Assembly (NCBI RefSeq): GCF_003704095.1
Contig: NW_020846649.1
Location: forward strand, 248,001 to 312,000
DNA from: Pocillopora damicornis
Lineage: Eukaryota
Reading direction: 5' to 3'
Length of the DNA stretch: 64,000 nucleotides
Shown here piece by piece: positions 1 through 20,700 of this stretch. The first letter of the stretch is position 1. Each line of letters begins with the position of its first letter. Made by a program: the position numbers and the translations under genes. Below the pieces are notes generated by a model. It worked only from the letters and a program-made list of their open reading frames with translations. It made no database searches and had not been told where the DNA came from.

Positions 1-211
1 TTTTCAGAGTAGACAGGGAAATGCACCAGTTGCCATCTTCTTTTGACAACCTTGCCTAATGGTTGCAGCAAAGAAAACCAACTTGACTTCAGAAGTTAAA
101 GAATACAACTACATGAACTATGCATGTGCACCACAAAAAATAGACTGGATAAAGTAATCTGCAGCCTATCAACTTTGATTATAACGGTTTCTACAGTTCC
201 TTCCCACTTAC

Positions 212-3200
212 TCATTACTTGGGTCTTCTCTCTTGGCATAAGCCTGCGACCTCATAATTCGTTCCATGTTTCCAGACCAACCATAAGAGCTGGCAACAAG
301 AGCACAGGGTGACTCATCCAATCGCTGTGAGACGGCAGCCTTCTCAATCAGATCTTTCAAAGCGTCCTCCTTCAGCCATTTTAGCAGAGGCTCGTATGTG
401 CTCTCTAAGGCTTCTAGCTTCTTCTTCTGTTTCTCTGATTCTTCTCCGATCTTCAAACCTTCCTTGGCTACATTTTGGAATTTCTTGCCTTCAAACTCGG
501 GCAGACTCTGGATGCAGTATTCATCAACTGGCTCAATTAAGTAGAGCACTTCATAACCCTTCTTGAGCAGACGTTCCACAAATGGAGAGCTTTCAACCTT
601 TAAATTAACATGACATAGAATTATATAAATTATATATATACATGTAGGTACAACAAAACCTGTACATGTGAAGGTATGCAAGCACATTAAAGTTACTACC
701 AACAAATTAGGTTGCCTCCTGGAAAAATTTTCATACGCACACTACTTTGAAAGAGACCATGGAAAAATATATATCACTGTAAAGCTTAAAAATTATAAAA
801 TATTCAAAATTTGAAACTTTTGAGCAGAATTTTTTGAAGTAACCTTAGTGCATCATCTTTAACCAACTAACAACTCAAGCAAAGTGGGAAAAGCTCTTCT
901 GATACAACCTTTCCATTCATAAGATAACTAACCTAATCATGCAAGTGACCAAGACAAAATTTCTCCTTACAATATCAACACAATATCAAACAGGTAGGTG
1001 ATGAGAATAGAGAAGAATATCAATTATGGGATTATTAGCTGATCCAATACCAAATTCTCTGAGCTAACATCATAAGAATTGTATGGCAGACAGTAAGGAG
1101 AATTACTAATTAGATCTTGGGAGTGAAAGGGTTAACAGCTGGTCCTGGTTGTGTGGATAACGCTATCCACTGGATAAATCTAGATGGTTAGTGATTTATC
1201 CACTGAAGAGCACTGTCATCCCTTTAACAACTGGGCCTGATTTCTATTATTGTGCAGGATCTCACCTCCTTTCGGCTGGTTCCTGCCATGAAATAGATTG
1301 CGTCTTGTTTTTCCTTCATCCTCTCAAGATAATCAGCCAGGCTTGTCATGTCCTTCTCAGAATTAGAAGAAAAGAATCGGAGCAATTTGGCCAATCTGGT
1401 TCTGTTGGAGTGGTCCTCCATCACACCTAACTTGATGCTACAATGAAAACAAAAATTTCAGTTTATTTCAAGGAGATTCAATCCAAGGAAATTATTGAAA
1501 CTAATAAAAATCAAGGATGAGATCAATTCTAGCAGCTTTGATTTTTGGGCAAACTTGAAGAGGCTGAACAAAAAAAGAAAAAAATAATAATGCAAGAAAA
1601 TTATATACCTTGTGCTGAATTCCTTCCAGAATTTATCCATGTATTCTTCCTTGGGGATCTTCTTGATCATGTCCAGAGCCTTTCGTACAAGCTTCTTCTT
1701 GATCACCTTCAGAAGTTTGTGCTGTTGAAGATTTTCACGACTGACGTTGAGAGGCAGGTCATCAGAATCCACAACACCACGGATGAAGGAAAGATACTTG
1801 GGCATCATATCTTCAAAGTTGTCAGTGATGAAGACACGTCGCACATACAGCTTAATCTGATCCATCTTCTTGCCATATTCAGAGAAAAGGTTGTTTGGGG
1901 CGGATTTTGGCACATAGAGGATTGAACGGAACGTGACTTCACCCTCAGCAACAAAGTGGGTCTTGGCAAGAGGCTCATCATGATCCTGATAAATAACATT
2001 CATTGTTAATATGTAATACAGTATTGGTGTCATTTAAAACCATGAAATTTTGGAAAGTTAGTGCAATAGGCAGCAAATTATTTTTAAGTACATTTTTACT
2101 CAACCTATGACATACTCCATGCAACCATAAAGTGTACACCTTTACCACAAATAAAACAACTTGGAAAAATAACACAAATTGTTACATTCCACACAAAACC
2201 TCTATAGTTACACATTTACTGACTTATTGACTCACAGATTTTTTATCTTCATCTTTCTTATTAATATAAAATGATTTTTCATGGCATGGGAAAGAAACAA
2301 TCCGAGAAAAAAGTCAAAAAGTGAAAAGAAACTTTAGATCACAGAATTCCAAGTTACACACTGGTTTGTTACTCAATAACAACTGTACAAGTTAAATCAG
2401 TCTTTCAGAACAACACATAGCACAGTTCCAGAAGATACCTTAGTGAACGATTTGTAAAATTCATTGTATTCTTCATCTTTGACATCTTTGGGTTTTCGGC
2501 TCCAGATGGGTTTGTTTGTGTTAATAAGTTCCCAGTCCCAGGTAGTCTTTTCCACCTGAAAAACAACAACATAAAAAAATAAATAAAAGTAACAAAAAGG
2601 TGACTTCATTAATTTCCATCCAATTGTAACTTTGTAACTTCCATATCAATTGCAGTCTGCAGACTCCAAACTTTAAGTTTAAATTTGCAAAACACTTGTC
2701 AGTAAAACTTCCTTCTACAGATAATTTGTTTGCCACAAGTACAGTTCCTATGAGGGTTAATCCTCCTACTCTCTTAGAGAAAAAAGTTCCTTCACACTTC
2801 AAACCCCAACAGTGATAGGCATCTTATTTCTCCCAATATCATTTGTGAATTAAACATAAACGCAATGAGAATAAAAGAAATGATGGCTAGATCAAAAGGC
2901 TCTTGATCATTGTGTAAATTCTTCATGAAAGTGACAAAGAAAACATTTAAAGAACAGTGTGGAGAATTTGCAAACTGATGCTAGGGTGTTAAGGGTTACT
3001 TAACCTGCAGCAGACAAACCTTTTTAGTCTTTGGTTTCTTCTCCTTTTCCTCTGATTCCTCCTCCACCTCTGCATCATCATCCTTGTCTTCCTTTTCTTT
3101 GTCTTCATCTTTCTTCTCCTCTTCCTTCTCTTCATCTTTCTTATCTTCCGCAGCTTCATCAGCTTTCTTGTCTTCTGCAGCTTCCTCCTCAACTGGTTCC

Positions 3201-6200
3201 TCTACTTCCTCAGTCTTGCTGGTCCACAGGTAAATGTTGAAGTTGATGAACTGACTGTACTTCTTGACAAGGTCTTTGATGGTGTCGGGCTCAAGGAAAT
3301 CGCGAGCTTCTTCTTTTAAGTGAAGGCTATGGGACAAAACACAATTTTATACATAATCAAATAATTCAAATAATGAGGCATTATCTTGCCTCTTAAAAAA
3401 GCATTTGTCAAACTCTTTGAAAACTAGGTGGAGGATGGAAGGGGGGAGGAAAAACACGCATTTCTGCTTAAAATGCACAGATTCAAACAAATATTTTACC
3501 TAAAAAATACAACATTAGACATAATAGGAATATTTGTCCTAAAATAGAGGGTAAAAAAAAAATAAAATGATTGTAAAATAGATGATCACAATGACTGCCA
3601 AAATAAGGTAACAACGCCAGAGGAAAAGAACTGATGTCAAGAACAAGGAGAAAATAGTTGAGGAACCAAGCTTCACCTTTTCTTCAAAGCCAGAGGCCAA
3701 AGTGTTTGATAAATATACCACATACTGGTAAATCACCCTGCATACACTATGTTTGGACAGATTGTTTAACGTACATTGAAAAGTGGATATAATCACCTGA
3801 CAGTTGTTCCCCTCTTCAGGGTGTCACCCCTAGGATCCTCTGTGATGCTGAAGGAAGCTGCATCAGACTCCCAAATGTACTGCTTGTCATCATTGTGCTT
3901 GGATGTTACAATCACACGGTCGGCAACAAGGAAAGTCGAGTAAAATCCCACACCAAACTGACCGATAAGATCACTTGCCTGATCACTAGACTGAGCGTCC
4001 TGTAGATTCAATAAAGTAAAGCTTTAAGGATATGGGGACAAAAGCAAAATGACTAATGTAACACTCAGCACTGCAAAAAATGACTGTGGGAAAACATAAC
4101 TGTAAGGGAGACCTTGAAAAAAGGGAGTACATAAGTGGGGTTTTGAATATTGCTGTGCACAATTAAGCTGACATAATTACCAGACACTTGCATCAAATCT
4201 ACAAATGTAAGCATCCACACCATCAAAGTCCTAATTTGGTTAGCGTGTGCTGCACTCTGCATCAAAGGCCTAAGGAAGTACAGAAAAAATTCTCACCGAC
4301 ATCTTCTGGAAAAACTCGCTTGTTCCTGACTTGGCAATGGTACCCAGGTTTTTGACCAGATCATCTTTTGTCATACCAATGCCAGTATCAGTAACATGAA
4401 GGATGTTGTTCTCCTTATCAGCTTTGATCTTAATTGACAGTTCCTCTGTGGCTGCAAGGGCTGACTTGTCCGTAAGTGACAAAAATCTGATCTTGTCCAA
4501 TGCATCAGAAGAATTGGAAATAAGTTCTCTCAAGAAAATCTGAAAGAAAAAAAGATAATTTCAACCTCTGATTATTACCAGGTATCTTTTTATTTTTGAT
4601 CGAAAATAATGCTAAGAACAAATTGACATCATCTACTGGTGGTACCAAAATTAATGAAATAATCAAGAAGTCTACAACAAATTTTCTTGTAACAGTGTTC
4701 AGTACAATAGTATGAATAAAGCTTGTATTTCTACCCTTCAAGATTTCGAAAAGTGCACATTTAAAGATCAAGCTGAATGTAAAAGTAGGGCTTAAAACAA
4801 ATTTTTGAATGGAGGCCAATAAAGCCAACTGACCAAAGAAATTTAAGCTTGTTCAGAACCCAACACTGACCCATCTCATTCATTAAATTACAGTTAAGAT
4901 GACTGTACATTAAAGACTTTCCAAAATGTACACAATTTATCAACTTGACGCAAGGTGGAGTTTTTGGCTGTAAGTCAATATTCTGGCTAAACACCATCCA
5001 TCAAACATCCACTTTTTAGAGTTTCTAGAACCAGCAGTTTTTTCCCTCAGATCTTGCTTATGCCATAACACGTCCAAAATGGTCAAAATAGAAAGTGCTG
5101 TCAAATTTCTCCTACCTCCTTATTTCTGTACAGAGAATTGATAATCAGCTTCATCATTCGGCTAACTTCAGCTTGGAAAGTGTGTTTCTCAGCCTTCTCT
5201 CTAAGTTCTTTCATCTGAGCCACATTCAAACCATCCAGTTTGATAGCTTCCTCCTCCCTCTGAACAGCTTCATCATCTGTCTTGGATCCATCTCTACTTT
5301 TTCCAACATCTTCATCTACTGTGGGTGGTTCTGTCTCTGTTGGTTCTTCTGTCTTTTCTTCTTCTGCCAAACAAAAAGCTGCAAAAAAGGAACCAAAAAA
5401 TTAAGTCTACCATGAAAAGTCTGACAAAAATCTCGTCTCAAAAAGTTGATACCAAGAAGAACAAGACAAAGATGATGCTACTTTAACAATTGCACATGTT
5501 CCCCAGAGCTCTGAAGACTCATGCAAATAAATTCAGTCCTACACTCTGATTTAAACTGTTGTTTTCAAGATAGCAAACCACTGTTTCAGTCAAGTACCTA
5601 TCAAAATAATAATTTATCCTTCTAAATTTCATTACTCCCCTTGCACTAATGCTTCAGACACTTTCTTGCAGTGGAATTTCTGACTTAGAATAAAGAAATG
5701 CATGTCATAATTGTGTCATTTTTTCACAATTTTTCCCCGTGAAAATAATACCTACAGCATTAGAATTATAAGCTATGCAGACAAAAATTTCAAAATCTAG
5801 CAGCAAATCAACTTGAGAGCTTTAGTACCAAGTAATTATCACATTAATTTATAGTCATGAAACAGGTATCTTTTACAAACAACATGAGAGACATTTTGTT
5901 TTATCAGTAGATAAAATAATTCCATTTTTCAATTCTCTTGCTTTTGAAACAATAAGATGCCATTAACTGAAAATGAAACATCTGGAGAAAACCTTTTTAA
6001 GTATGTAAGGTGAACAAACAAAACAACACATAAAATCCCTTAACTCAAAAACCTGTGGTAAAGAACTACATTGTTTATAACAAAGGGCTCAAGTGGACCA
6101 CAATGTTATTGTTAATGAAACTTAAAATTGCACAAGAAAAAATAAAATAAAATAAGTTGAATAAAAACAAATTTCTTTCAATTTCTTTTCAAATAGTTGA

Positions 6201-7182
6201 CAATCTCTATGAGCTACAAGTACTTGTTTATCTTCAAGATGTTGGACATATCTGGCCAATTCCTATTGGTTGATAGCAAGTATCCAATCACAGGTTGACA
6301 TATCTCGAGGGCTGGATTTTTAAAAGTTTTGAGTGCTTTTTCTAACAATTAGCTAATGCAACTTCCCAAATTAGTGCTTTTGCAGACGTTTTCCACTAAA
6401 GCTGTTTCAGAAATAACTTTTTGCCACCTCTTATATCTAAATGCATGAAAGTGTACCCTAAAAATTTTCAAATAATCCACTCCAACATGATTTGAAAAAG
6501 AAGGGATTTCCCAAACTCAAACCCTCAAAATCATCTCAGTTAGAAATCTAATAAAGATTATCTAGTGGCTCTAAGGAAAAATAATTCAACTATGTAATAT
6601 TTCGTTGTAAATTCACTTTCTATATAAGAGTATTCATTTAAATGTAATTGAAGTCAATAAGTTATACCAGAGAAACATTGTATAATAAACAATACCATCA
6701 ATGTAAGTATACAAGTCTAAATTATCCTTTAGGACCGTGTTTCGTTTCATAATATCCACAATTTCCGAGTTATATTTCCGACGGTAGACGTACATGAATC
6801 TAAATCGTTGCCAATAAGTACGTTGCTAATGGACAGTTTCCAATCGACACAAGTGAGTGGTGAAATCGAAAGGCAATCGATCGTGACTTGACAATATAAA
6901 CGTATCGAATTTTGCAATTACCCACAGACCGAATACTCTGAAGCTTACTTTTAAAACAAAACGGCCGAAACCTTCCCTGCAAATCTGACGTAGGACTATT
7001 TGCTTTCATGTACATTGAAACGAAATAAAATTTTTCGTGAGCATAAAAATTATTCGAGGAAACTGTGCGAACTGAAATACTTGCAAAACTCAACTTTTCC
7101 TTACGCAAAAAAAAGCAAGAGTACACTTACAAGAAATAAGAAGTAGCCCCAAGAGGCCTAGCAGGTACGATTTCCTTCCCAT
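212..7182 (-). CDS. HSP90B1: Endoplasmin / GRP94 (ER HSP90), 3'-partial
   Basis: Coding exons 7182-7131 (signal peptide [17 protein letters not shown]), 5378-5116, 4539-4297, 3999-3797, 3326-3020, 2555-2439, 1985-1609, 1437-1266, 597-212, all GT-AG with compatible phases. HSP90 motifs [63 protein letters not shown]; GRP94-type [11 protein letters not shown] and FQNVAKEG. Final exons (and the expected KDEL) lie beyond position 1. Confidence 0.98.
927..1135 (-). mobile_element. TTAA-flanked ~210 bp MITE, subfamily A
   Basis: Ends ...gagtgaaagggttaa; internal sequence shared with the copies at 9620, 13692, 56415 and 63491. Confidence 0.75.
1139..1238. repeat. Short palindromic MITE-like element
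   Basis: Imperfect inverted ends ggtcctggttg / caactgggcc with internal tggataaatc / gatttatcca symmetry. Confidence 0.55.
2757..2998 (+). mobile_element. TTAA-flanked MITE, subfamily B (degenerate)
   Basis: Similar to 22074-22285 (agaacagt.tggagaat.tgc..actgatg.tagggtgt.aagggtta). Confidence 0.6.
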
Positions 7183-7287
7183 TCCTTGAAATCAAGATAA
7201 AACAGATGTAAATGACAGCAGTACCGCAAAATCTGTGCTAAACTTTGAAGTGCAAGGAAGTACTATGCAGCTTTCAATCGATCCAAA

Positions 7288-7375
7288 CCAACCAAAATTT
7301 TCCACGGCCAAAGCTCGTGTCTTGTTCTAATTGGCTAATCTTAGTCACGTGCTTAACGTGGAGCCCTTTGGTTGG
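7288..7375. promoter_or_regulatory. Three ERSE-like elements in the HSP90B1/CRELD bidirectional promoter
   Basis: CCAAC-N9-CCACG at 7288-7306 (+); CCAAT-N9-ACACG at 7316-7334 (-); CCAAC-N9-CCACG at 7357-7375 (-); E-box GTCACGTG at 7344-7351. Each differs by one base from the ERSE consensus CCAAT-N9-CCACG and keeps the exact 9-nt spacer. Confidence 0.8.
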
Positions 7376-7883
7376 TTTATTTTTCCATGTCATTTCATTG
7401 ATTCCCATGAGTGAGCCCTCGCTTTGCGCCGAGGTTTAAAAAGTATTTGAGAGAATTTACTTTTAAACTTATTAAAAAGCTACTTAGCTTTGTTCTCAAA
7501 TGATCAATAGATCTACCAACTCTGAAAATTTCAGATATATTTTAATGTTTTGTCTCACCTCACGTGGAATGATTATGAATTTAGGACGCAAAAAAGTGAT
7601 ACAAATTATTGTACAATGGCTGATCAAAACTTTATTCTCCTATCTATTAGCGCGGTTTTCCCTGACTCACCAGCGGTTTTCTCTTCAAGAGAAACACGAT
7701 AATTTCACCGGGCTGAAATGTTATGCGACCAGTTTTCTATAATATAATCTTGCTTTAATTCAGTGATCGAAGTTATATTAACCTATTTTCGAATGATGTG
7801 GTAGAATTCTACCCTTCGAATTTCTGCTGTTAAATTTGCACTTGTAGACACATTGCAGCATTTTTTTTCTCACGTGAGAGCTA

Positions 7884-10800
7884 ATGGAAGTCTCTTTGAA
7901 GATGTCAAAAACCTTGATTTTACAAATCTTTATAGTTGTAAACATTTTAATGTGCACCGCACTTAGATCAGCTGCTAGGGAAAAGAAAGCCAAATGCCCA
8001 ACGTGTAGAGACATCGTAGAAGCTTTCAAGAAGGTAAATATTAAATGCTTTTATCTCACCTAACTCCTAATTATTGCATTACAGAACTTTGTCAAATGAT
8101 TAATTATGGGGCTAAGTCAGCTTAGGTATATTTTGTGGTGTCGTATTTCGTAAGATTAGATAGAAATTTAATGGACGGTTTCGATTTTTGTTTCTGGAAA
8201 AATTATCCTTTGTTTATTTTGTTTTGCTTTGTTTTTTTTCTAGTTTTTGGCCTAAATATCTCTAATGATATAATAGAGAGGATGTGCAGTAAAACTTTGA
8301 CAAAAGTTTGAGAGACGTGTTAGAATTAAATAACAAATGCATAAATTAACTCGTAAACCTTAAGTATTAGATTTTTTTTTGCCCTTGATCTTGCTATATA
8401 TCTATATTCCTTGTAACTGATTTGAGGAAATTTGGTGCTAAATCAAGGTAATACCTTCTAGCTGATAGATTTGTCAATTCTTGTGAATTCTTTGCTGTTT
8501 AATCTTTGGTTATTACAGAACTTCTTGAAGTTGAGCCATTCTTTCTTATGTTATATTTTGGTATGCAGATTTTAGGACAGATGTGAGGAATAAAAAATTT
8601 GACTGTAGCTGTTTTAAGGTGACTGGAATAAATTTGCATCTTTGAGACATCTATTTTTAATTAAAATTACTATTTTTAGGGAAAAGAAAAAACAGCAAAA
8701 GCTAACTTTGGTGGTGGAAACACAGATTGGGAAGAGAGGAAACTTGGAAGCTATGCAAACAGGTATTTTTTGGAAAAAAAAACTTTATTCAAACTTTTAC
8801 CATGACATTATTTTACTATGACTCAGCTAAATCCACCAATCACAGAATTGATCACAATTACCATAGCAACAACCACTTACCTTGAAAAGAAAACTGGGAA
8901 ATTTCCAAATTTTTTGCTTCAGACACTGTTCTTAGCGGAGACATTTGTCCTAATTGTATTTTCTTTCCAGATATTGTATTGGTTTGATTAATTGGTAGCA
9001 GGACTTCATGTTGTCCAGTTCTGTCTGTAATCATACTTATTATTGACAAATCAGACTCCCATTCATGGTCGTCCAATTTTGTTAATAACTCGTGTGATTA
9101 CTGGCTGAATTGGACCCCACTCGTTCCTATTACCATTATTAAGCTGTAATAGTCTTCCTTGACTAAGTCCTTAACCCATTAACTACCATGAGTGAGCAAC
9201 CGAAAGTGATGAGAATAAAGAAAAATATCAATTATGGGTTTACTAATTGATTCAATACCAAATTCTCCAAACTAACTTAATGAGAATCATTTGGCAGACA
9301 GTACGGAGAATTACTAATGAGATCTTGAGAGTTAAAGATTAAGGCCTGTTTCTATTGTCTTCCACCTGTATTGAATGGCCACTTAAAGCAGAACCTCTCA
9401 AATAAAACTAAGAATAATCTCTCAAGTCAAATTTATTCTCAAAATCAATGTTAGTACTTTGAGAATTCCCACAAGTTATTGCAGATTATTGTTTTTCTTT
9501 GAACTGTTAGGACAACTATTATGCACAAACAAAGCGCAAGTCATTTGCTGGTCAGACTGTATTAAAGGGTCAACTTGTTGTATTAAACTGTCACCCCGCT
9601 ATTACCCATGGGTGACTGCCTAACCTTTTAACTCCCAAGATCTCATTAATAATTCTCCCTACTGTTTGTCATACAGTTCTAATAATGTTAGTTCCAAGAA
9701 TTTGAATTGGATCAACCAATTATCCCCAAAATTGACATTAATTTTTTTCTCTATTCTCATCACTTATCTGGTTGATATTGTTTTGATATTGTAAGGAGAA
9801 ATTCTTTCTCGGTCACTCATGGGAGTTAAAGGGTTAATACAGGTTTGACTGAAGTGGGCTGTTGTCCCTTTTCTTTGATACACTCAGGAAAGTTACCAGT
9901 TTCTTGGTGATACCACATCTCTAGTCTGGAATCCCTCTGCTATGGAAAAAACACTGACTGATGATGTACTGTGGGGCACAAACAAATTTGTACCATTGTT
10001 AAGTGGATTAAATAATACCCTAGAGTTCATGCCACACCTTTTTGAAAGAGTGCAGCTTTTTATTTTAGGGTTATACCTGAAGGAAAAAACTACTAGTATA
10101 AACAGTTGGTGGTTAATGTTCTTTTGTTTTCTTTTTGACTAGTGAAACCAGACTAGTTGAAATTATGGAAGGACTTTGTGAAGATAGTGCTTCAGAGGTA
10201 ATTTTCTTTGAAATTTATTCCTTTAGTTCAAAACGTTACTGTGAAGTCACAGGATTGGAGTATTCTAAATTGTGCAAAATAACTTAGCTTTAAAATGAAG
10301 GCAATTTGCGGAGGATAAAATTTTAAAGAGATATTTTGCATTTTTGCCATCATTCTGTCTTTCTTACGCCTCCTTGAAGAAGGGCACAAGCTAGCCGATA
10401 GTTCAGTCCCCTTGACTTCTCCTAGAAAATAAACTGTCTTTGATTGTCAATTTTTTTCCTTTTTTTTTTCTTTTTTTACAGTGCCATGCAATGGTTGAAG
10501 AACAAGAAGAAACATTAGAGGAATGGTGGTTTACCCAGTAAGTGAGGTTTTGATGGTTGAAGTTTTTTATCCTATTTCAGGGAAGTCACATGGAAATCAA
10601 ATGACATTCTTTAAGTGCAGCAATTTTGTGCCCCAAAAATATCAAAAAGTTTTTTATTTAAAAACATGCAGTCCTAACGTTTAATGACTGTTTTCTTTTT
10701 CACAGCCAGTTTAAAAATGATGACATGAATACTTGGTTTTGCATTGACAAGTTAAAAGGTAAGTGTTGTACATACTGAAAGTTCCTTTTTATCACTTTCC

Positions 10801-13800
10801 TAGCTGGAGTTCATTATTTTAATTTCTTTTTTCTTTTCTTTTTTTTTCTAGTGTGCTGCCCTAATGGCACTTATGGTTCAGATTGTAAAGGTATGCCTAC
10901 TTAGCAGTCTTCATTTACCACTGATGATTTGCAAATTTCACCTTTTACGGCTTTAGACTTCAACAGTGTTCACTTTGTATGTGTTCTTTACAGTGAAATG
11001 GCTTTCATTTTAATTTATTAATGATCAGACAAATGTTTTGTTCAATGTCAGACCCCATGTTTGTCATAATGAGTAAGTCTCCTTGGCCCCTTTTCAACTT
11101 AAGCTAATGTGAACCAATTTTATATGTACTTATTTTCTGTTGCTCATTTAAAAAATAAATTCATCTCTTTCTAAAAGTTTTCCTTCTATTATTTTGAATC
11201 TGTAGAATGTTCAGGAGGAAAAGATACTCCTTGCAATGGCCATGGAAAATGTGAGGTATGCAAGTATCAATTTTGAATGAAAGGGCTGAACTTTTATACA
11301 GCTTATTTTTAAGACATTGTAACGGAATTAACTCTTGGACCTATGCATTACCAGCTCTGTGTTGCAAGGAGTAAAACACATGCACAGTGTTGACCTGATT
11401 ATTTTATTTTCAGCTTACCAGTAAATGTCAGGAATTGCAGTGCCCTTGTGAAAAGTACCCTAGTTTTATAATAAATATCTTTGCAATGATATTTAGGGTG
11501 ACGGCACAAGGGAAGGAACAGGAAATTGCTCATGTGACAGCGGGTATGAAGGTGACTTATGTGATGAGTGCGAGGAGTTGTATTTCGAGGAGCAAGATGA
11601 AAATTCTAAGCCTAAATGCACCGGTATGTATTCTACAAATTATCTTGGGTTTGCAACTCCTTGTGTTATGTATTGTTACGTAAACAGCTGGCACTTGATA
11701 ACAAACTGTTGCTTATTTTAACAGCGTGTCACGAGTCTTGTGCAGACAGTTGCTCTGGCGGCTCACCCAAAGACTGTGAGAAATGCAAAGAAGGCTGGGA
11801 TATGACAGACGAAGATGGATGTAAAGGTATTTGTTGAAAAGTATATTTGGCGCGACTGTGTAGTTCCATGTATGCCCAAGAGCTGTGCTCCTGCCCTTTC
11901 TTAACGGATTCCAAGAGCGAGGGGAAAGTTAAAGTTTAAGCAGATTACAAGCAAGACAAGGGATAGGGAAAGCAAGTTGCCGAATAAAAGCGCAGGAAAA
12001 TGGAAAGGCGATGCAAAGAGCGGGGAGTAACATGCAGGTTGTCTGTCTCAATGTTAAGTGAATGCTTGAGGAAAGTCATCGTTAGAAAAGCCCGAAAAAA
12101 TGTATAGGACTAGTAACAAGCGTTGCTTCACAAACAACGCATGCCAAGCGCAGGAAAAGATACAGGTAGAGAAAAGTGCGGGAAAGGATATGCAGGCGTT
12201 ATATACGTAGTAAGGAATAAAGACTGGAATTGGGCGTACAGGTGGGATAACGTACAACGCAAGCCAAGCGCGGGAAAACATAAGTAGCGGGGAGAAGCGC
12301 GGGAAAATAAACGGAGCTCAGCGAACTCAAAACCATAGCAAGCATACTCTGTGGTTACTTTTGAGTTTTGACAGCCAACGGGATGCATGTTGTTTTGATT
12401 AATGTATTTTATTCTTTTCAGATAAAAATGAATGTGATGAAGAACATATCTGTGGAGAGGGACAGTATTGTGTGAATAATCCAGGATCTTTTGTTTGTAA
12501 AGGTAATGTGTATGACCCATTAATCGTGGCGAGTTTATTGAGTGATTTTCATTTCGCCGACATTCAGTTGTTTGATTGACTGCTCGCAAACGTAGTCTCG
12601 AAGTTGTTACCAAATTCTCATTCGAAGACCCAAAACATAAATGAATGGTCATCATCTTGTACTTAAAGAAAACCTTACTCCGTTAGATCGGGCAATTCCA
12701 AGGCTCTCAGACTTTGCGGGACAGCTAAAGAGCGAGCGGGCTACAAAATGGCGGCTATTCCGATCCATCCCTCCATTCGGACAGATAATAAGTGACTTAA
12801 CAATTCACTTCATATGTATCTTTTTCAGGCTGCGATGATTCTTGTGAAGGCAACTGCACTGGGGAGGGTCCAAAGGGATGTCTTGAATGTGCCAGCGGTT
12901 ATGTTAAGAATGACGAAGAAGAATGTAAAGGTTAGTTTATTACAAGAAATGAGGAGCACTTTGTTACTTGGGATGTGATAGATATATCTCGCCGAGGTTT
13001 TATTTGTTGCAAAAATGCCACAAAACGCTCATAGCACTCAACACTTTTAAGAAAGCAGCCTAGGTTAGTAGAAATTCAGTTTTGAAAATAACGAAATTGC
13101 ATTTGTTGTTGAACTAAAGCTCAGCTGTAGACTAGGGGAGAAGGGGTGGAGGTTTGTCCAAGAGAACATGCGAATTAACCCCCCCCCCCAACCCCGTTGC
13201 CTTAGCGCTCGTTTAAGCCTCTGGCAAATTGTTGAAAACCGCATTTTGGACTGAATAACTAGTTGCAAAAGGTGAACTTAAGTTCGAATATATTTTAAAG
13301 TATTTAATTAACTTGAATTTTTTTTCCTTAGATGTGGACGAATGTTCCGAGAATTCAACCATCTGTACCAGCGGAAAATTTTGTGATAATACCCCTGGAT
13401 CATTTGTTTGTCGTTGTAAGAAATCTTTCTGTCTGTCATAATTGTTTTCCATCTGTCCCTTTTAAGACGTTTTGATATTTAAGGAGAGGTTGTTTTTAAT
13501 TCACCGTGCTTTTATTTCAGCCTGTCACTCTGCTTGTGAGACTTGTATCGGAGAGGGGTCTCGAGGTTGTACAAAATGCAACGCTGGGTATCAGATGACC
13601 GAGAATGAATGTAAAGGTAATAATACGCTTTCTCTATCAATGAGAATATCAGGGATAAACAGTGAACGCAAGCTAAGCGGTTCTACCTGTTTTATCCCTT
13701 TAAATCCCAAGATCTCATTAGTAATTCTCCTTACTGTCTGCAATATAGTTCTTGTGATGTTAGTTTGGAGAATTTAATATTGGATGAAGTAATAATCCCC

Positions 13801-15149
13801 TAATCAAGATTTTTTCTTTGTTCTCATCACTTGTCTGCTTGATATTGTATTGATAGCGTTAGGAGAAATTCTGTCTTGGTCACTCATGGGAGTTATCGGG
13901 TTAACCCAGTTTCCGTAGCATAAAGCGAGTTGGAGAATTGCAACTCCTCAGTCCTGTTGGACGGGATCAGTCTAGCCCGCGAGCACTAGCTTCGTTAGTA
14001 GCGCTGCAAGACGGGTATTTCTCTGTCCGTGGAAATATTTCAAGCGAATCACGGAGAGGTTTTCAGGGGGTTTGGCTCTAATAATCAGTGCTAGGCACCT
14101 TGCAGACCTCGCGGCGACTTACGTTGTTTAAGGCCTCACACTTTCCCGCGGGCGAAGAAACACTCGTGCCAAAGCACCAATGATGAGGGCCTGGTCGCCA
14201 GGATTAGCCTTTCATAGTTGACCACCCTGTGATTCGTCAAATGCCAAGAAGATTTGAACTAAGATAATTGAAAGTCGCCAGTTTGCGACCGTACACCATG
14301 ACATGGTCGCCAGAAATTATATTTAGTCGCAATTTTCCATGGAAGATGGCGACCAAGAATTGATGGTGTTTTGTGCAAATGATTATCTAAGTGGTAAAAG
14401 CGTTACACCTTACATGAACGTCGAACACAGTTTGTGAATTGTCTTTTTCGTTGTGAATTGTCTACTGCCCAAGTAGCGTTAATACTTGCGATGATGACTC
14501 TCATCTTAATAGTTCGTGAAATTCATTATGAGGACTTTCGCGGTCGCCGAAGTGTTTTCCGCCCATCATGTCGACCAAATCGGTCACCGCTTAGAGCGCT
14601 GCGTTTACACACACTGATGGCGAAAGACCGTTTGAGTCTTACATAAGGGCCGTTTGAGTCTTACATAAGGGGAGCCAACTAAGGCTCTAACCCGGATAGT
14701 TCGATCTGAAGTCTAGCGTGGCAAACATTAGGCCACCAAGTTCCCCACGAGAAATCTTCAAAACGAAGAAAAATTATTTATGTTATTATTTAGATAAGGA
14801 CGAATGTTCCTCAGACGAACACAGCTGCGACCGAGAATCAGAAAAATGCCGAAATATGCCGGGTAGTTTCACCTGCGATTGTCAGAAAGGCTTCAAACGT
14901 GATGGGGACAAATGTGTGAAAAAGAAAGGTAAAAAAAAGACGGATAAAGGCAAAAAGACAGTGGAAGAAGAGCTTGCAGATGTGCTAAAAAAGGGCGACT
15001 ACTTCAGCGAAATGCAAATGAAATTTGGTTCCGTCTTATTCGCATTATTTTTCGCTTGTGCAGTTGCCGCTGTCATGAAACGCAGCTTGCTTGCTATAGT
15101 TGTTATGACTGTTGTGTATGCTTTCATTTGGTGGTACTTCAGAACGTGA
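7884..15149 (+). CDS. CRELD: CRELD (cysteine-rich with EGF-like domains), membrane isoform with two C-terminal TM helices (CRELD1-like), ~477 aa
   Basis: Exons 7884-8033 (signal peptide, CPTC CXXC motif), 8680-8762 (KTAKANFGGGNTDWEERKL signature), 10143-10197 (SETRLVEIME), 10482-10537 (EEWW, WE domain), 10706-10758, 10852-10890, 11206-11255, 11497-11623, 11725-11826, 12422-12502, 12829-12930, 13332-13415, 13521-13616, 14794-15149. EGF, furin-like and Ca-binding EGF (DxDEC) repeats. Summed length 1434 nt is in frame. The start may be the second ATG at 7902. Confidence 0.95.
8822..9142 (+). repeat. ~320 bp interspersed repeat, copy 1
   Basis: Reverse-complement homologue of 57062-57393 (ctcagctaaatccaccaatcacagaattgatcacaat...cctattaccattattaa). 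Confidence 0.8.
9171..9342 (-). mobile_element. TTAA-flanked MITE, subfamily A (internally deleted)
   Basis: ttaacccattaact start; ggcagacagtacggagaattactaatgagatcttgagagttaaa end. Confidence 0.7.
9620..9837 (+). mobile_element. TTAA-flanked MITE, subfamily A
   Basis: taaccttttaactcccaagatctc ... gggagttaaagggttaa terminal inverted repeats. Confidence 0.8.
11985..12310 (+). repeat. Degenerate tandem-motif repeat (gcgc[ag]ggaaaa units) in a CRELD intron
   Basis: Recurrent aagcgcaggaaaa / gcgcgggaaaa motifs. Confidence 0.5.
13692..13904 (+). mobile_element. TTAA-flanked MITE, subfamily A
   Basis: ttatccctttaaatcccaagatctcattag ... gggagttatcgggttaa. Confidence 0.8.
14628..14671. repeat. Exact 22-bp tandem duplication
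   Basis: ccgtttgagtcttacataaggg twice. Confidence 0.85.
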
Positions 15150-16308
15150 CAGTTGTGGACACCTGAGGTAGAAGAAAGATTCTGCGTGATAGATGTAGGT
15201 CTGATTGTGGAGATGAAATGCAAGATCTGCATAATCAGACCCATTCACTTTTTGAAGCTTTTTGGCCTGAACACTTATTTTAGTGGTATCCCCCGAGAGG
15301 GTTTTTTAGAACAAGATAGACCCCCGTGTTTTTTCTTACCTCCGAGGTCGAACCACGTGTTGCTGTTAAACCAAAGCCTTCGTAGAGCCAATTCGTGCGT
15401 TATACATGTTCTATTAGTTGATTGAGATACCTGACTGGAGGTATCAATTCTTCTGATATCATATAATTTTTTTTCAATCTTGATAAAAATTCTAAAAAAA
15501 AATACAGAGAGAGTTAAGTTCAGGGAGATCAGGAGGTTGTCCATTTTTAACATCTTAAAAGATGTTAATGTAGCCTGAATCGTATAAAGTTTAATATATC
15601 AATACATCTATCGAATCAGAGGGCCGTTGTTTGTAATTGTTGGTTGAGCCGGGTTGGGAACTTTGCGATCCTAAACAAGCTTGGCTCTTTAGAGACATTT
15701 TGCACCACGAAAAGATTTTAAAAATATAAATGAAGAGCTCCTTTTATTTCAGCCGAAAGGCAGTTTATCTACCTACCTTAATTTAGCTGAAGTTTTACAG
15801 AAAACAATCGGTAATTTAGCTCGTTTATAAACTTTGACAATTTAGAGTAACATTTTGCCTATATTAATACTTTCAAAAAACCCCATTATTAAGGATGAAA
15901 TGTAGTTGCAGGAGTTTTGTGTATCTCTTGCGTGACAACATAGTAGTGTCACGTAATTCGAGTTACATTGTGCTAATGACGTAACTTACTCTTAAATGCT
16001 TTTATCCAGAAATTCACTTGTGTGGTGTCACTTTTGCTGTTGTTGCTTCTCTTTCTATCGGGTTTCCTCTAACATCCCTCTTTCAAGAGGAGGAAGAACT
16101 CCAAGTGTTTTTTTTTTTTATAAACGATGTCAACTCGTTTCTCTAAAGGTCGTGTGTAAAGTTCGTGAAGAGTGTTCGTTCTGCTTGGTTGTAGCTTTAT
16201 GGCGTACGTGTGCTTGTTTTTTCTTTGTTTGCTAATGTTATGTGTGTTTATTTGGGTTACTTCGTTTTGTTTATTTTGTTTTGTTTTGTTTTTCTGTTGT
16301 TACTGTAG

Positions 16309-16412
16309 CAGTTGTGAAGCATGAAGAGGAGCAGGAGGAAGATGATGACGAGGACGATGAAAAAGAAAAGGATAATAGCAAAAGTGACTCCAGCGAGAAG
16401 GAGGAATTATGA
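16309..16412 (+). CDS. CRELD: Alternative terminal exon of CRELD encoding an acidic tail ending KEEL (soluble CRELD2-like isoform, ~438 aa)
   Basis: Long T-rich tract then tag/cag tandem acceptor at 16306-16311. Phase-1 reading gives (A)VVKHEEEQEEDDDEDDEKEKDNSKSDSSEKEEL-stop. AATAAA at 16448-16453. A phase-1 donor AAG/gtaaaa after 14928 lies just after the last EGF domain and before the TM region. Confidence 0.85.
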
Positions 16413-17726
16413 AACAATTCTTTTGTAAAATTGTAAGGGAATTTAGAAATAAATTATTTATTCAATTCTTAACAAACCTTGCTACACCGCCCACTAAGAA
16501 ACATTGTAGTGAGGGTACTCAAGGTTTCTACCCTCCCAGGGGGTTCTAAGTAGAGTTATCCCCCCTATTCGCCTCCACCTCTCAAACTGCGTGACATCTG
16601 CGCACGTACACTGGCAAGTGCACAAAAGTCAGACACGAAAACACCTACAGATTGCAAGTATAAAAATGGAACGTGCGCCCCTGATCGTCACACTACACTT
16701 GGGTTTTAGACTATTCTGAGTTAAAGAAGTGCTTTACTCTACTACTTAAAAGTCGTAAACTATGTTTGCACATGATTGTACAACATGGAAGGGAAATGTA
16801 TCCCAACACAACCTGAACCAAATGCATATTCATCTTACTAAGGAAGAACTGGGAATAAGTCTAGATTGAGGGTTCCTGCGATCATGCCTGTTCACATTAT
16901 TTCTCTCGACAACAAGAACGCCAGATCGAAAGTTAGGAGCAGGGAGAAAGACCGCATTCATTGTTTAATTTTCTTTTTTTTATTAGTATCTGTTTCATAT
17001 TTCTACTTCCTTGAACATTCGAAGAAAAATCTACACCCTGTGGGGACTTTCTCGCAATGTTACTCTCTGCTCCAGGTATTTATTCACCGATTTTTGCTCG
17101 CTCGCAATATCGTCTTTGCTACACGACGGTTACAGTTCTTATAAAGAAAGTAGTGAAACAAAAGTGATGGCAAAGAGCGGCGCCAAACATCACCGTGGCT
17201 CTTTAGGAAGTAACTTTATTATCACTTAGACAGAAGGGTCCACATTGCGCCGCAATCTTTAAAATACTTTCATTTGGCTCCATGAAAACAAATTCTTTAC
17301 GCTTCAGAGTTAAATTGAGATATCATAGTCTACTTATTCTGATTGCATAAGAGATGAAACGTCGATGTATCACAAACCATGTTACGCTGTCAGACGCAAC
17401 GAACACTCCTAACGTCATGGCTCATGACAGAAAGGAAACGATTTTTAGTCACCAGTCTCCGCTACTATAGCCACGTCACATTTTTCCACTTTGTGTTAAA
17501 ATCAATACTGTATCAGCTACAACCGTATCCTCTGATTGAGGTCTGAGTTCGAGTACGAGGCAGCAATATTTGCTCGGCGCATGATGTGTGGAAGCATGCT
17601 CATTCAACTAATAATTACATTGTTATCTTTAGTTAGAAGTTCTCCGGTTTCTACAGGCAAACTGATTTGAGTATAAGGTATTCAAAGAGGACTCAATTTT
17701 TATTTCGTTTTAATCGTTACTCAGAG

Positions 17727-20700
17727 TCAATAATCGTCGTCATCGTTATCAGGTTGGGCAGTCTCCACCTCCTCGTAATCTTTCTCCAGAGCAGCAAGAT
17801 CTTCACGCGCTTCAATAAACTCTCCTTCCTCCATGCCTTCGCCGACATACCAGTGAACAAACGCGCGTTTAGCAAACATCAAATCGAACTTGTGATCCAA
17901 ACGAGCCCACGCCTCAGCGATGGCAGTGCTGTTACTAAGCATGCAAAGCGCCCGGAGCAAATTGGCCTGATCCCCGCCGGGGACAACCGAAGGGGGCTGG
18001 TAGTTGATTCCCACCTTGAAACCCGTCGGGCACCATTCGACGAATTGCACGGTGCGTTTGGATTTTGTGGCGCAAATTGACGCGTTCACGTCTTTGGGAA
18101 CGACGTCGCCTCTGTAGAGCATACAGCAAGCCATGTACTGTCCATGCCTCGGATCGCATTTGACCATCTGATTGGACGGAAGGAAACATCGGTTGGTTAT
18201 TTCTGCCACGGTCAGCTGCTCGTGATAGGCTTTTTCTGCGGAAATGATCGGAGAATAGGACACCAGAGGGTAGTGAATTCTCGGATATGGCACAAGGTTG
18301 GTCTGGAATTCAGTCAGATCGACATTCAATGCGCCATCGAAACGAAGAGAGGCAGTGATGGAGGACACTACCTGCCCGATCAGACGATTGAGATTCATAT
18401 ACGTCGGTCGTTCAACATCCAGGTTTATCCGACACAGATCATAGATGGCCTCATTGTCCATCAGGAACGAACAGTCTGCATGTTCCAGAGTGGAATGCGT
18501 GGTCAATACAGCGTTGTAAGGTTCGACCACTGCTGTAGACACTCTGGGCGAAGGATAAACACAAAACTCCAGCTTCGACTTCTTGCTGTAATCAACAGCC
18601 AAGCGCTCGATGAGGAGAGAAGAAAATCCCGAACCTGTTCCACCACCGAACGAATGCGAAAGAAGGAATCCTTGGAGACCAGAGCACTGATCCGCCTGCA
18701 AAATATAAACCAAAGCCCTTGGGTAGACTAGGAAACTCTTTACTGCGATGTAGAGAATACAGTAAGAAGTTTTCTCGTCTACCCAAAGGCAAACCACAGA
18801 TTTTCCAATACGTGATTTTAAACCGTCATCCATTAAAAAAGCACAACTGAGGCAGACAGAACAGTAGCGCAGACGTCAAGAACCGACTCGCCTGTAATAT
18901 GTCTAAACCCAAGGCTGCAATTGAAACTAAACTTAAAACGAAAACCGCCCCACATGGCATGAACCCTCCCTGCAAGAGGGTTATAAAATTAATCACAAAT
19001 ATTTTGAGCCCACAGCCGTGGGTTTATACAAATACAGAGCGAGACAATTCCTAACGGCCGATTGTCACTAATGGGTCTTTCGAACTCCTTTAAAACATAT
19101 CCTAAAATTTCGGAAATTTTGTATGAGTGTGTGCAGGTGTACATGTAATTTTTCTTTCTGTATACAGGGTGAGGTTGACCGCAGGAAGGGGCAAATAAAA
19201 TCACCAACAGATGTACTTTTCATCAGGGGATTTTCTTTTTTAACAATTTTTTTATTTTAAGCCCCGAGTCATTCATTCTTCTGATCACTTTAGAGGAGGT
19301 GGTGAACTTTTAGTTTACTTTTTTTTTCTTATGTTTTGTTGTTTTGTTTATGTCACTTTTTCCTTAAGCATTTTTATCTGCCACCACCGTTCCTCAATTT
19401 TATTCATGTTTTTTGTTTGTTTGTTTTCTATTTCTTTTTGTCTCTGGGGCTTTCTTTCTTTGATTATTTTTGTTGTTGTTGTTGTTTTTGCTTATGTTAT
19501 TTTTTTCCGTCGTTTTCCTGTTTTATGCTTTTCTTTTCCCTCCCTGGAGTACATCTGTTAGCCATTTCATTTGGGGAAGGGCCCGACCGGGTCAAACCTC
19601 AGAAACCAGTTGTTGTGGATCATTTTCCAATCACACTTTCCATTTTGCCCCCAAAACACCATCTCCGTCAACCGCAAGCCAAACCTTCAAAGTATTTCAA
19701 GTCTTTCCCTCCAAAAGCAATTTCACTACTATTCCTTCCCTACCCATATCTGCCTCAGTGGCCAAACTCTATCAACACACAACATGATATCTAACTAACG
19801 TCTACCCTTGCAGTAGTTTCGAAAAACCACTGACCATTCTTCGGATTCTATCCATCACCAGGTCGAGGATTTCCTTTCCTATGGTGTAGTGCCCGCGAGC
19901 ATAATTGTTAGCGGCGTCCTCCTTGCCACTAATCATCTGTTCCGGGTGGTAGAGTTCTCGATAAATTCCTGTACGTGCCTCATCTGTGGACAAAACACGA
20001 TCAGTGATCACCAGAATCTAATCTTCACAGAGGAAATAACCACATCGTGATAAAGCAAACAAACAAATACGATAACAAGAGCACAAAACAAAAGCAACAA
20101 GAACAGCTAAAACAACAAAAACTTTGGATAAAAATTGACTTTGGTGTTTGTTTACTGACTACTTGCAACCTCCCATTTTGTTGATAGAAGGTCAGGACAC
20201 TAGCCATTTGCAGCACAAGTTTCCTACCTCTCCTCCACGGTTGGGTAGCAGTGTCCATCCTTCCCTCCCCTCCCGCCCACAGACCTCTTTTGCTTATAAT
20301 ACAAAATTTTAGTCGAAGTTTTGACGCGATAGGGGTGGATTTTTGAAGTGGTTTAACTGCATAATTTCGTATATTCTCCTTTAAGGATTTTCTAGAGCAA
20401 GAGCATTCAAAAAAGAAATTGCAAATGACAAAAACAAAGCAAGATCAAAGGGGAGAAAACACGGCAAGTCAGATTGAGTTCTTTATGACTTTTAAGCCTA
20501 GGACCAAAATACTTATTATAATCCTTATCGGAGAAAAAGCAACAAATGCGAGAACTACAAAACAGCTTAGAAGAAGGCTAAATCACTTTCAATCGATAAA
20601 GCTTGGTTAGTATCGGTAGAATGTTACTCCTCTATTAACCAGAATTCATGTACACTTAAGTAAAGTTGGTTATATCTTGCTGAAGCCAAGTTCATAGTTG

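Follow-up and report, generated by a model that had tools for sequence, protein, structure and literature searches.

Can one CRELD gene of a stony coral give rise both to a membrane-anchored and to a luminal protein of the endoplasmic reticulum (ER), and by which choice? The question is raised by a locus of Pocillopora damicornis (RefSeq assembly GCF_003704095.1, contig NW_020846649.1, positions 248,001 to 312,000). This stretch of 64,000 nucleotides (nt), called here the window and numbered from its first letter, holds the single CRELD gene of the coral, with 14 exons on the forward strand (7884-16463), modelled from the reading of exons and from spliced RNA contigs. In C. elegans, crld-1 yields CRLD-1A, with two transmembrane helices, and CRLD-1B, with a KDEL end, by a choice between the last exons 9a and 9b, which have an acceptor each (D'Alessandro et al. 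2018, PMC6245729), and vertebrates divide the two CRELD forms between two genes, CRELD1 and CRELD2 (PMC6245729). A preliminary description of the window, made from the sequence alone, had stated this background correctly and had proposed that the coral gene makes a two-helix membrane form and a luminal form ending in KEEL. RNA contig breakpoints in three studies and the conservation of both C-termini bear this proposal out. We give a probability of about 0.85 to the reading in which one splicing choice at the last intron of the single CRELD gene sets the C-terminus, membrane or KEEL luminal.

Two alternative C-terminal tails in the last part of the gene

Exon 14 is preceded by an AG at 14792-14793 and lies in one open frame from 14794 to 15149, the membrane tail being contiguous with the exon and having no acceptor of its own. 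The common part of the exon (14794-14928) codes for the last EGF_CA domain and ends at an internal donor, AAAG/GTAAAAAAAAG. The G at 14928 is at codon position 1 and is followed by GT at 14929-14930, which makes this a phase-1 donor. Reading through the donor (14929-15149, the 5' part of the alternative intron) gives KKKGKKKTDKGKK... and encodes a basic linker, KKKGKKKTDKGKKTVEEELADVLKKGDYFSEMQMK, that continues into two hydrophobic segments, at about residues 75-95 and 97-115 of the exon-14 peptide with KRS between them, up to a stop at 15147-15149. The Kyte-Doolittle scores of the segments went up to about 2.1 (19-residue window), which predicts two closely spaced C-terminal transmembrane helices and hence a CRELD1-like tail. 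Frame, hydropathy and stop thus agree with the basic linker and two helices of the preliminary description. The remainder of the alternatively retained intron (15150-16308), without its own AATAAA or ATTAAA, would serve as the 3' untranslated region (UTR) of the membrane isoform.

At the other end of this intron, a pyrimidine tract and a tandem acceptor, TGTAG/CAG/, occupy 16282-16311. The two AGs, at 16307-16308 and 16310-16311, both lead into the frame (A)VVKHEEEQEEDDDEDDEKEKDNSKSDSSEKEEL-stop, which ends at 16412, and here too the frames from the internal donor to either acceptor came out as first described. The alternative terminal coding exon (16309-16412) carries an acidic tail, (A)VVKHEEE...DNSKSDSSEKEEL, and a stop; joined by a splice from 14928 to 16309, it adds 34 acidic residues with no transmembrane segment. 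The classical ER-retrieval pattern is [KRHQSA]-[DENQ]-E-L, and the KEEL before the stop fits it, giving a CRELD2-like end. The 3'UTR follows at 16413-16463, with cleavage and polyadenylation at about 16463 and an AATAAA that we located at 16448-16453, at the distance of 36 nt past the KEEL stop given earlier. The donor after 13616, at the end of exon 13, is likewise in phase 1 and has the same AAG ending.

The exon lengths up to 14928 total 1213 nt, in phase 1. With 218 nt of read-through the total comes to 477 codons, and with 101 nt from the KEEL exon to 438, both in frame, so that the exon boundaries read by eye check out.

RNA contigs across the last intron

Of the words sampled from 14794-16460, 68-77% were present in twelve runs that are recorded as RNA and come from three studies. 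Four runs, each from a different study (X1, X2, X3 and X13), all as Logan contigs, were mapped to 11000-16800; the RNA status of X13 on record is a guess, and its contigs were found to be spliced, one of them with a poly(A) tail. Every junction from exon 7 to exon 14 was present in RNA contigs as a GT..AG joint. At the end of the gene, contigs of exon 14 terminated at 14928 in X2 (record 13), X3 (record 17) and X13 (record 9), read-through contigs began at 14899, a k-1 overlap, in X13 (record 10), X2 and X3, and terminal contigs began at 16307 in X2 (record 15), X3 (record 23) and X13 (record 11). The read-through ended at 16336 in X13 record 10, X1 record 6 and X3 record 22, the 14899-starting contigs of X2 and X3 stopping earlier. 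With words of 31 letters, the branch nodes lie at 14928/14929 and 16306/16307. Since the exon ends in ...AAG (14926-14928) and the intron in ...TAG (16306-16308), the AG is common to the spliced and unspliced paths, and with this shared AG a junction 14928/16309 predicts precisely the breakpoints seen. Had the acceptor been 16312, the node would be expected at 16310; the breakpoints therefore fit the first AG, with an exon start at 16309. Of the two junctions put forward in the preliminary description, that to 16309 is thus strongly indicated by the contig breakpoints and that to 16312 does not fit them.

The stretch 14929-16306 was itself covered by RNA, by unbroken contigs in X1 and X13 and by separate pieces in X2 and X3. 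Rough depths for exon 14, the read-through and the terminal exon were 245, 77 and 221 in X13 and 45, 17.9 and 27.1 in X2; contig depths are unreliable, and these point the same way as the contig ends. Most other introns had no contigs in any of the four runs, and intron 13 had just pieces at 2-5x (X1 and X3), outside its repeat; this silence argues against a carry-over of DNA or of pre-mRNA in general.

One X13 contig ends at 16463 with a run of A followed by the Illumina adapter, which marks the poly(A) site, and a scan of 15150-16500 for AATAAA or ATTAAA gave a single match, at 16448. Both mRNAs apparently share the poly(A) site near 16463. With this sole signal and with read-through contigs that reach 16336, the membrane isoform is best viewed as the product of a retained terminal intron, the KEEL exon forming part of its 3'UTR. 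As no exon junction lies downstream of the membrane-form stop, its mRNA would be without the usual trigger of nonsense-mediated decay.

In the mechanism that we propose, a donor left unused after 14928 would let translation run through the lysine-rich linker and the two helices to the stop at 15149. The product would be an ER-membrane-anchored protein of about 477 codons, CRELD1- or CRLD-1A-like in its predicted topology, and its mRNA would keep the 1.38-kb 'intron' as 3'UTR. Splicing of the same donor to 16309 would remove the helices with the intron and add the 34-residue acidic KEEL tail; the resulting soluble protein of about 438 codons could be retrieved to the ER by KDEL receptors, like CRELD2 or CRLD-1B. 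We infer ER retention by KEEL and the membrane topology, and the ratio of the two forms may be regulated.

The RNA runs differed by many single bases and by small indels at 12863-12877 and 15700-16220, with a 13-nt deletion at 16150 in X13. Exon 11 and the retained intron hold most of these differences, which would fit a mixture of several Pocillopora lineages or alleles in the public data. A loose contig end of X13 at 16358 was considered as a splice and rejected: it has no preceding AG, sits in the acidic low-complexity repeat, and was taken for a contig of another locus or a chimera.

Conservation of both tails and competing readings

A protein-library query with exon 14 and the membrane tail was swamped by multi-EGF giants and returned no full-length CRELD, four single-exon fragments being useful. 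The homologues of the exon 14 open reading frame (ORF) were single-exon fragments of 42-99% identity, and the linker and both helices were free of stops in the 16 sequences of alignment A1, down to 42% identity. Seven loci were then compared with the window (L009, L010, L011, L012, L013, L014 and L016), all but L014 covering the downstream region; L012, L013 and L016 are host contigs in metagenome assemblies. The phase-1 donor AAAG/GTAAAAA was found in all seven, L014 having the variant AAAG/GTAAAGA. Each of the six long loci has a tract of pyrimidines, an AG in phase and an acidic tail with xxEL-stop, the stop lying 1.2-2.8 kb past the donor. The tails end in KEEL in L009 (76% identity in the last exon), REEL in L010 (63%), HKEL in L011 (61%), HQEL in L012 (52%), HDEL in L013 (about 43%) and HEEL in L016 (about 44%). 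The downstream xxEL exon is therefore kept in 6/6 long loci at 42-76% identity in the last exon, which upholds the conservation of the KEEL frame that the preliminary description had predicted for related species.

In the four closest species (window and L009-L011), the tandem acceptor TGTAG[A/C]AG (in TGTAG[A/C]AGTTGTG), the stop, the 3'UTR and the AATAAA align. The length of the tail exon is 2 mod 3 in all four, with indels of 12, 15 and 18 nt, and the invariant sites number 23/32, 26/33 and 13/33 at codon positions 1, 2 and 3. Similarity at the DNA level between the window and L009-L011 is restricted to a few islands: exon 13, the part of exon 14 that reaches roughly to the stop of the membrane tail, the KEEL exon, and intron sequence around 16012-16071; L009 has in addition a short match of 79% at 15920-15961. 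Since donor, acceptor, frame, xxEL and poly(A) signal are kept in six loci and the RNA breaks at 14928 and 16307, the signals of the tail are more than chance.

The intronic island (16012-16071) lies about 250 nt upstream of the KEEL acceptor. Its core, TGGTGTCACTTTTGCT, does not vary between the window, L009, L010 and L011, its flanks being unalignable, and it may be a splicing regulator. A pairing of the island with the donor region that would mask the donor was rejected, as it was no better than in shuffled sequences (z -1.9 to +0.35). A weak donor as the cause of partial use was rejected too, several constitutive donors of the CRELD gene also being without a G at +5.

In L013 (639-1055), the database protein P0096 reads TGA as W, and under the standard code the membrane-tail ORF ends earlier, in ...TAPTDDGEL; this is probably an artefact of the code used by the gene caller on a eukaryotic contig in a metagenome.

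The alternative that survives best, and that we still regard as unlikely, is that the KEEL exon is partly or mainly joined to the donor after 13616, so that exon 14 is skipped and the last EGF_CA domain lost, possibly as a third isoform. With its phase 1 and its AAG ending, that donor fits the frame and the 16307 breakpoint equally well, and contigs break at 13616 too. The 14928 break, however, is specific to the internal donor, which is conserved at the nucleotide level in all loci, and the 13616 break can be explained by low-level retention of intron 13 (2-5x in X1 and X3).

The conservation of both tails indicates coding constraint on both, and this removes the explanations in which one isoform only is real. 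One of them, which we consider quite improbable, takes the KEEL isoform as the functional one and the read-through RNA as incompletely spliced pre-mRNA, the two-helix tail not being made. The read-through path has indeed the form of an intron retention, and Logan contigs cannot tell nuclear pre-mRNA from mature mRNA. Yet the linker and two-helix ORF stays open in the 16 aligned sequences with DNA conservation ending at its stop, most other introns lack RNA contigs in the same runs save for the shallow pieces of intron 13, and CRELD1 and CRLD-1A have the same two-helix tail (PMC6245729). The converse, to which we give hardly any credence, would leave only the membrane isoform as real, with KEEL as a chance acidic ORF in the 3'UTR and the contig breaks as polymorphism or assembly noise: the unbroken RNA contigs from exon 14 to 16336, the joint missing from those listed, the low-complexity acidic tail and its lack of a database match would suit it, but frame, stop, acceptor, xxEL, 3n indels and third-position variation are kept at 42-76% identity, the breakpoints are precisely 14928 and 16307 in three studies, and in X13, X2 and X3 the read-through is shallower than the terminal exon.

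Several points weigh against the splice choice at the last intron as we read it. All runs were used as Logan contigs, which give no strand, true ends or reliable levels. The joint 14928>16309 itself was absent among the joints listed (15 of 21), the junction being deduced from contig breakpoints, and in X1 one contig spans 14792-16336 with no break at 14928. By consensus the internal donor looks no weaker than several constitutive ones, although it would be used only in part. The HKEL of L011 departs from the classical retrieval pattern, and a search of a large protein collection with the 56-residue KEEL ORF, for which only proteins of 31-98 residues were eligible, gave no match.

The coral gene, its neighbours and other CRELD systems

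The coding part of exon 1 (7884-8033) has its first ATG at 7884 and a second in-frame ATG at 7902. Its translation, read by eye, starts with a signal-peptide-like hydrophobic leader followed by KCPTC, a CXXC motif. This corresponds to C27XXC30, conserved at the start of the WE domain after the signal peptide (PMC6245729). Exons 2 (8680-8762), 3 (10143-10197), 4 (10482-10537), 5 (10706-10758), 6 (10852-10890) and 7 (11206-11255) were placed by eye, the 3' junction of the last, 11255>11497, being found in spliced RNA contigs. These contigs also defined exons 8 (11497-11623), 9 (11725-11826), 10 (12422-12502), 11 (12829-12930), 12 (13332-13415) and 13 (13521-13616), the latter joined to exon 14 by the junction 13616>14794. 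Record 1 of X1 reaches 571 nt upstream of 11495, a length accounted for by exons 1-7 (486 nt) and some 85 nt of 5'UTR.

Exons 2-13 code for a WE-like region, EGF-like domains, and cysteine-rich (furin-like by eye) and EGF_CA units, the coral protein having three cysteine-rich plus EGF_CA units. Searched exon by exon against Pfam, exon 8 matched EGF_laminin and EGF_2, and exons 10, 12 and 14 each matched EGF_CA (E-values 1e-4 to 1e-9). The WE domain DUF3456 (PF11938), split over five short exons, gave no exon-wise Pfam match at the locus, and a six-frame PF11938 scan of the genome matched three other loci and not the CRELD locus. By eye, the exon 2/3 peptide TDWEERKLGSYAN(S)E is identical at 11/15 positions to the WE-domain peptide TAWEEEKLRSYKNSE of Drosophila Creld (PMC9307246). 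In the 234-Mb assembly, the exon 2 peptide, the exon 8 peptide and the exon-14 linker with its helices matched this locus only, the EGF_CA part of the exon 14 query matching many other loci; the single-locus matches of the CRELD-specific exons and of the membrane tail point to one CRELD gene. The Protein Atlas gave weak leads, the 'Creld1 isoform X1' cluster at 0.80 being below the useful threshold.

A repeat of about 210 nt is found in introns 2 (9610-9840) and 13 (13690-13900), with a related piece at 9240-9340. RNA contigs stack on it with summed depths of 24,000-72,000 and many joints to other sequence, and it looks like an abundant short interspersed element, or one resembling a miniature inverted-repeat transposable element (MITE), present in many transcripts.

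On the minus strand, head-to-head with CRELD, a run of ORFs at 208-5370 has HSP90-family sequence and an acidic stretch. As far as the sequence goes, it looks like an endoplasmin/GRP94-type gene, and such a neighbour would fit an ER-stress setting like that of CRELD2. On the other side, 1.3 kb past the CRELD poly(A) site and convergent with it, a tubulin-like ORF of 368 residues (alpha-tubulin by eye) lies at 17727-18833 on the minus strand. The tubulin gene adjoins CRELD also in L009, in the P0156 contig and in L011, so that the gene neighbourhood is conserved among these corals.

The coral gene resembles C. elegans crld-1 in its putative signal peptide, the CXXC of its WE-like region, the EGF domains, the alternative of a two-helix end or a retrieval end (KDEL in the worm, KEEL in the coral), and the alternative splicing at the 3' end. 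The worm, in contrast, uses two last exons that each bear an acceptor. In the coral, the anchor is encoded where an internal donor is read through, within the alternative intron, and the two forms seemingly share one poly(A) site. The lengths differ as well, about 477 and 438 codons in the coral, known here from sequence and RNA contigs, and 356 and 310 residues in the worm. Compared by description, the coral isoforms match the C-terminal types of both vertebrate proteins, CRELD1 with its two helices and the soluble CRELD2 with REDL/RDEL, on an N-terminal body of like kind; what vertebrates do with two genes, the coral does by a splice choice in one. Brief published predictions also assign two isoforms to one gene for planarian Smed-CRELD, transmembrane and secreted (PMC5055394), and for Drosophila Creld, with two peptides (PA and PB) made by alternative splicing (PMC9307246). 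A literature search found no paper on CRELD isoforms of cnidarians.

The coral is thus an expected extension to cnidarians of the one-gene, dual-isoform CRELD, a principle already published for worms and flatworms; what sets it apart is the membrane anchor inside a retained terminal intron and, apparently, the shared poly(A) site. An isoform switch that predates the cnidarian-bilaterian split is the parsimonious, unproven reading. As the architecture is unlike that of the worm, common ancestry of the switch is not demonstrated, and the two designs may have arisen independently. A further proposal, speculative and in our view rather doubtful, is that the anchor of CRELD is encoded inside a conserved, regulated retained intron whose donor would be governed by the island at 16012-16071, that under ER stress or heat the gene would switch its product, a disulfide isomerase, from membrane-bound to luminal or secreted or the reverse, and that this would be the ancestral metazoan state before the subfunctionalisation of vertebrate CRELD1 and CRELD2.

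The conceptual gain is modest, since the principle was published for worms and flatworms. The locus presents a one-gene, two-topology design of CRELD in a non-bilaterian animal and speaks for the idea that the tasks of two older splice isoforms were shared out between CRELD1 and CRELD2 in vertebrates. In C. elegans, acetylcholine-receptor assembly is supported by the membrane form only, and in P. damicornis a creld2-like gene, a candidate for the same gene as the one described here, was reported as a front-loaded stress gene (bioRxiv 10.1101/640177). Expression counts at the gene level merge membrane and luminal forms that may act differently, and isoform-aware quantification is needed in work on coral stress.

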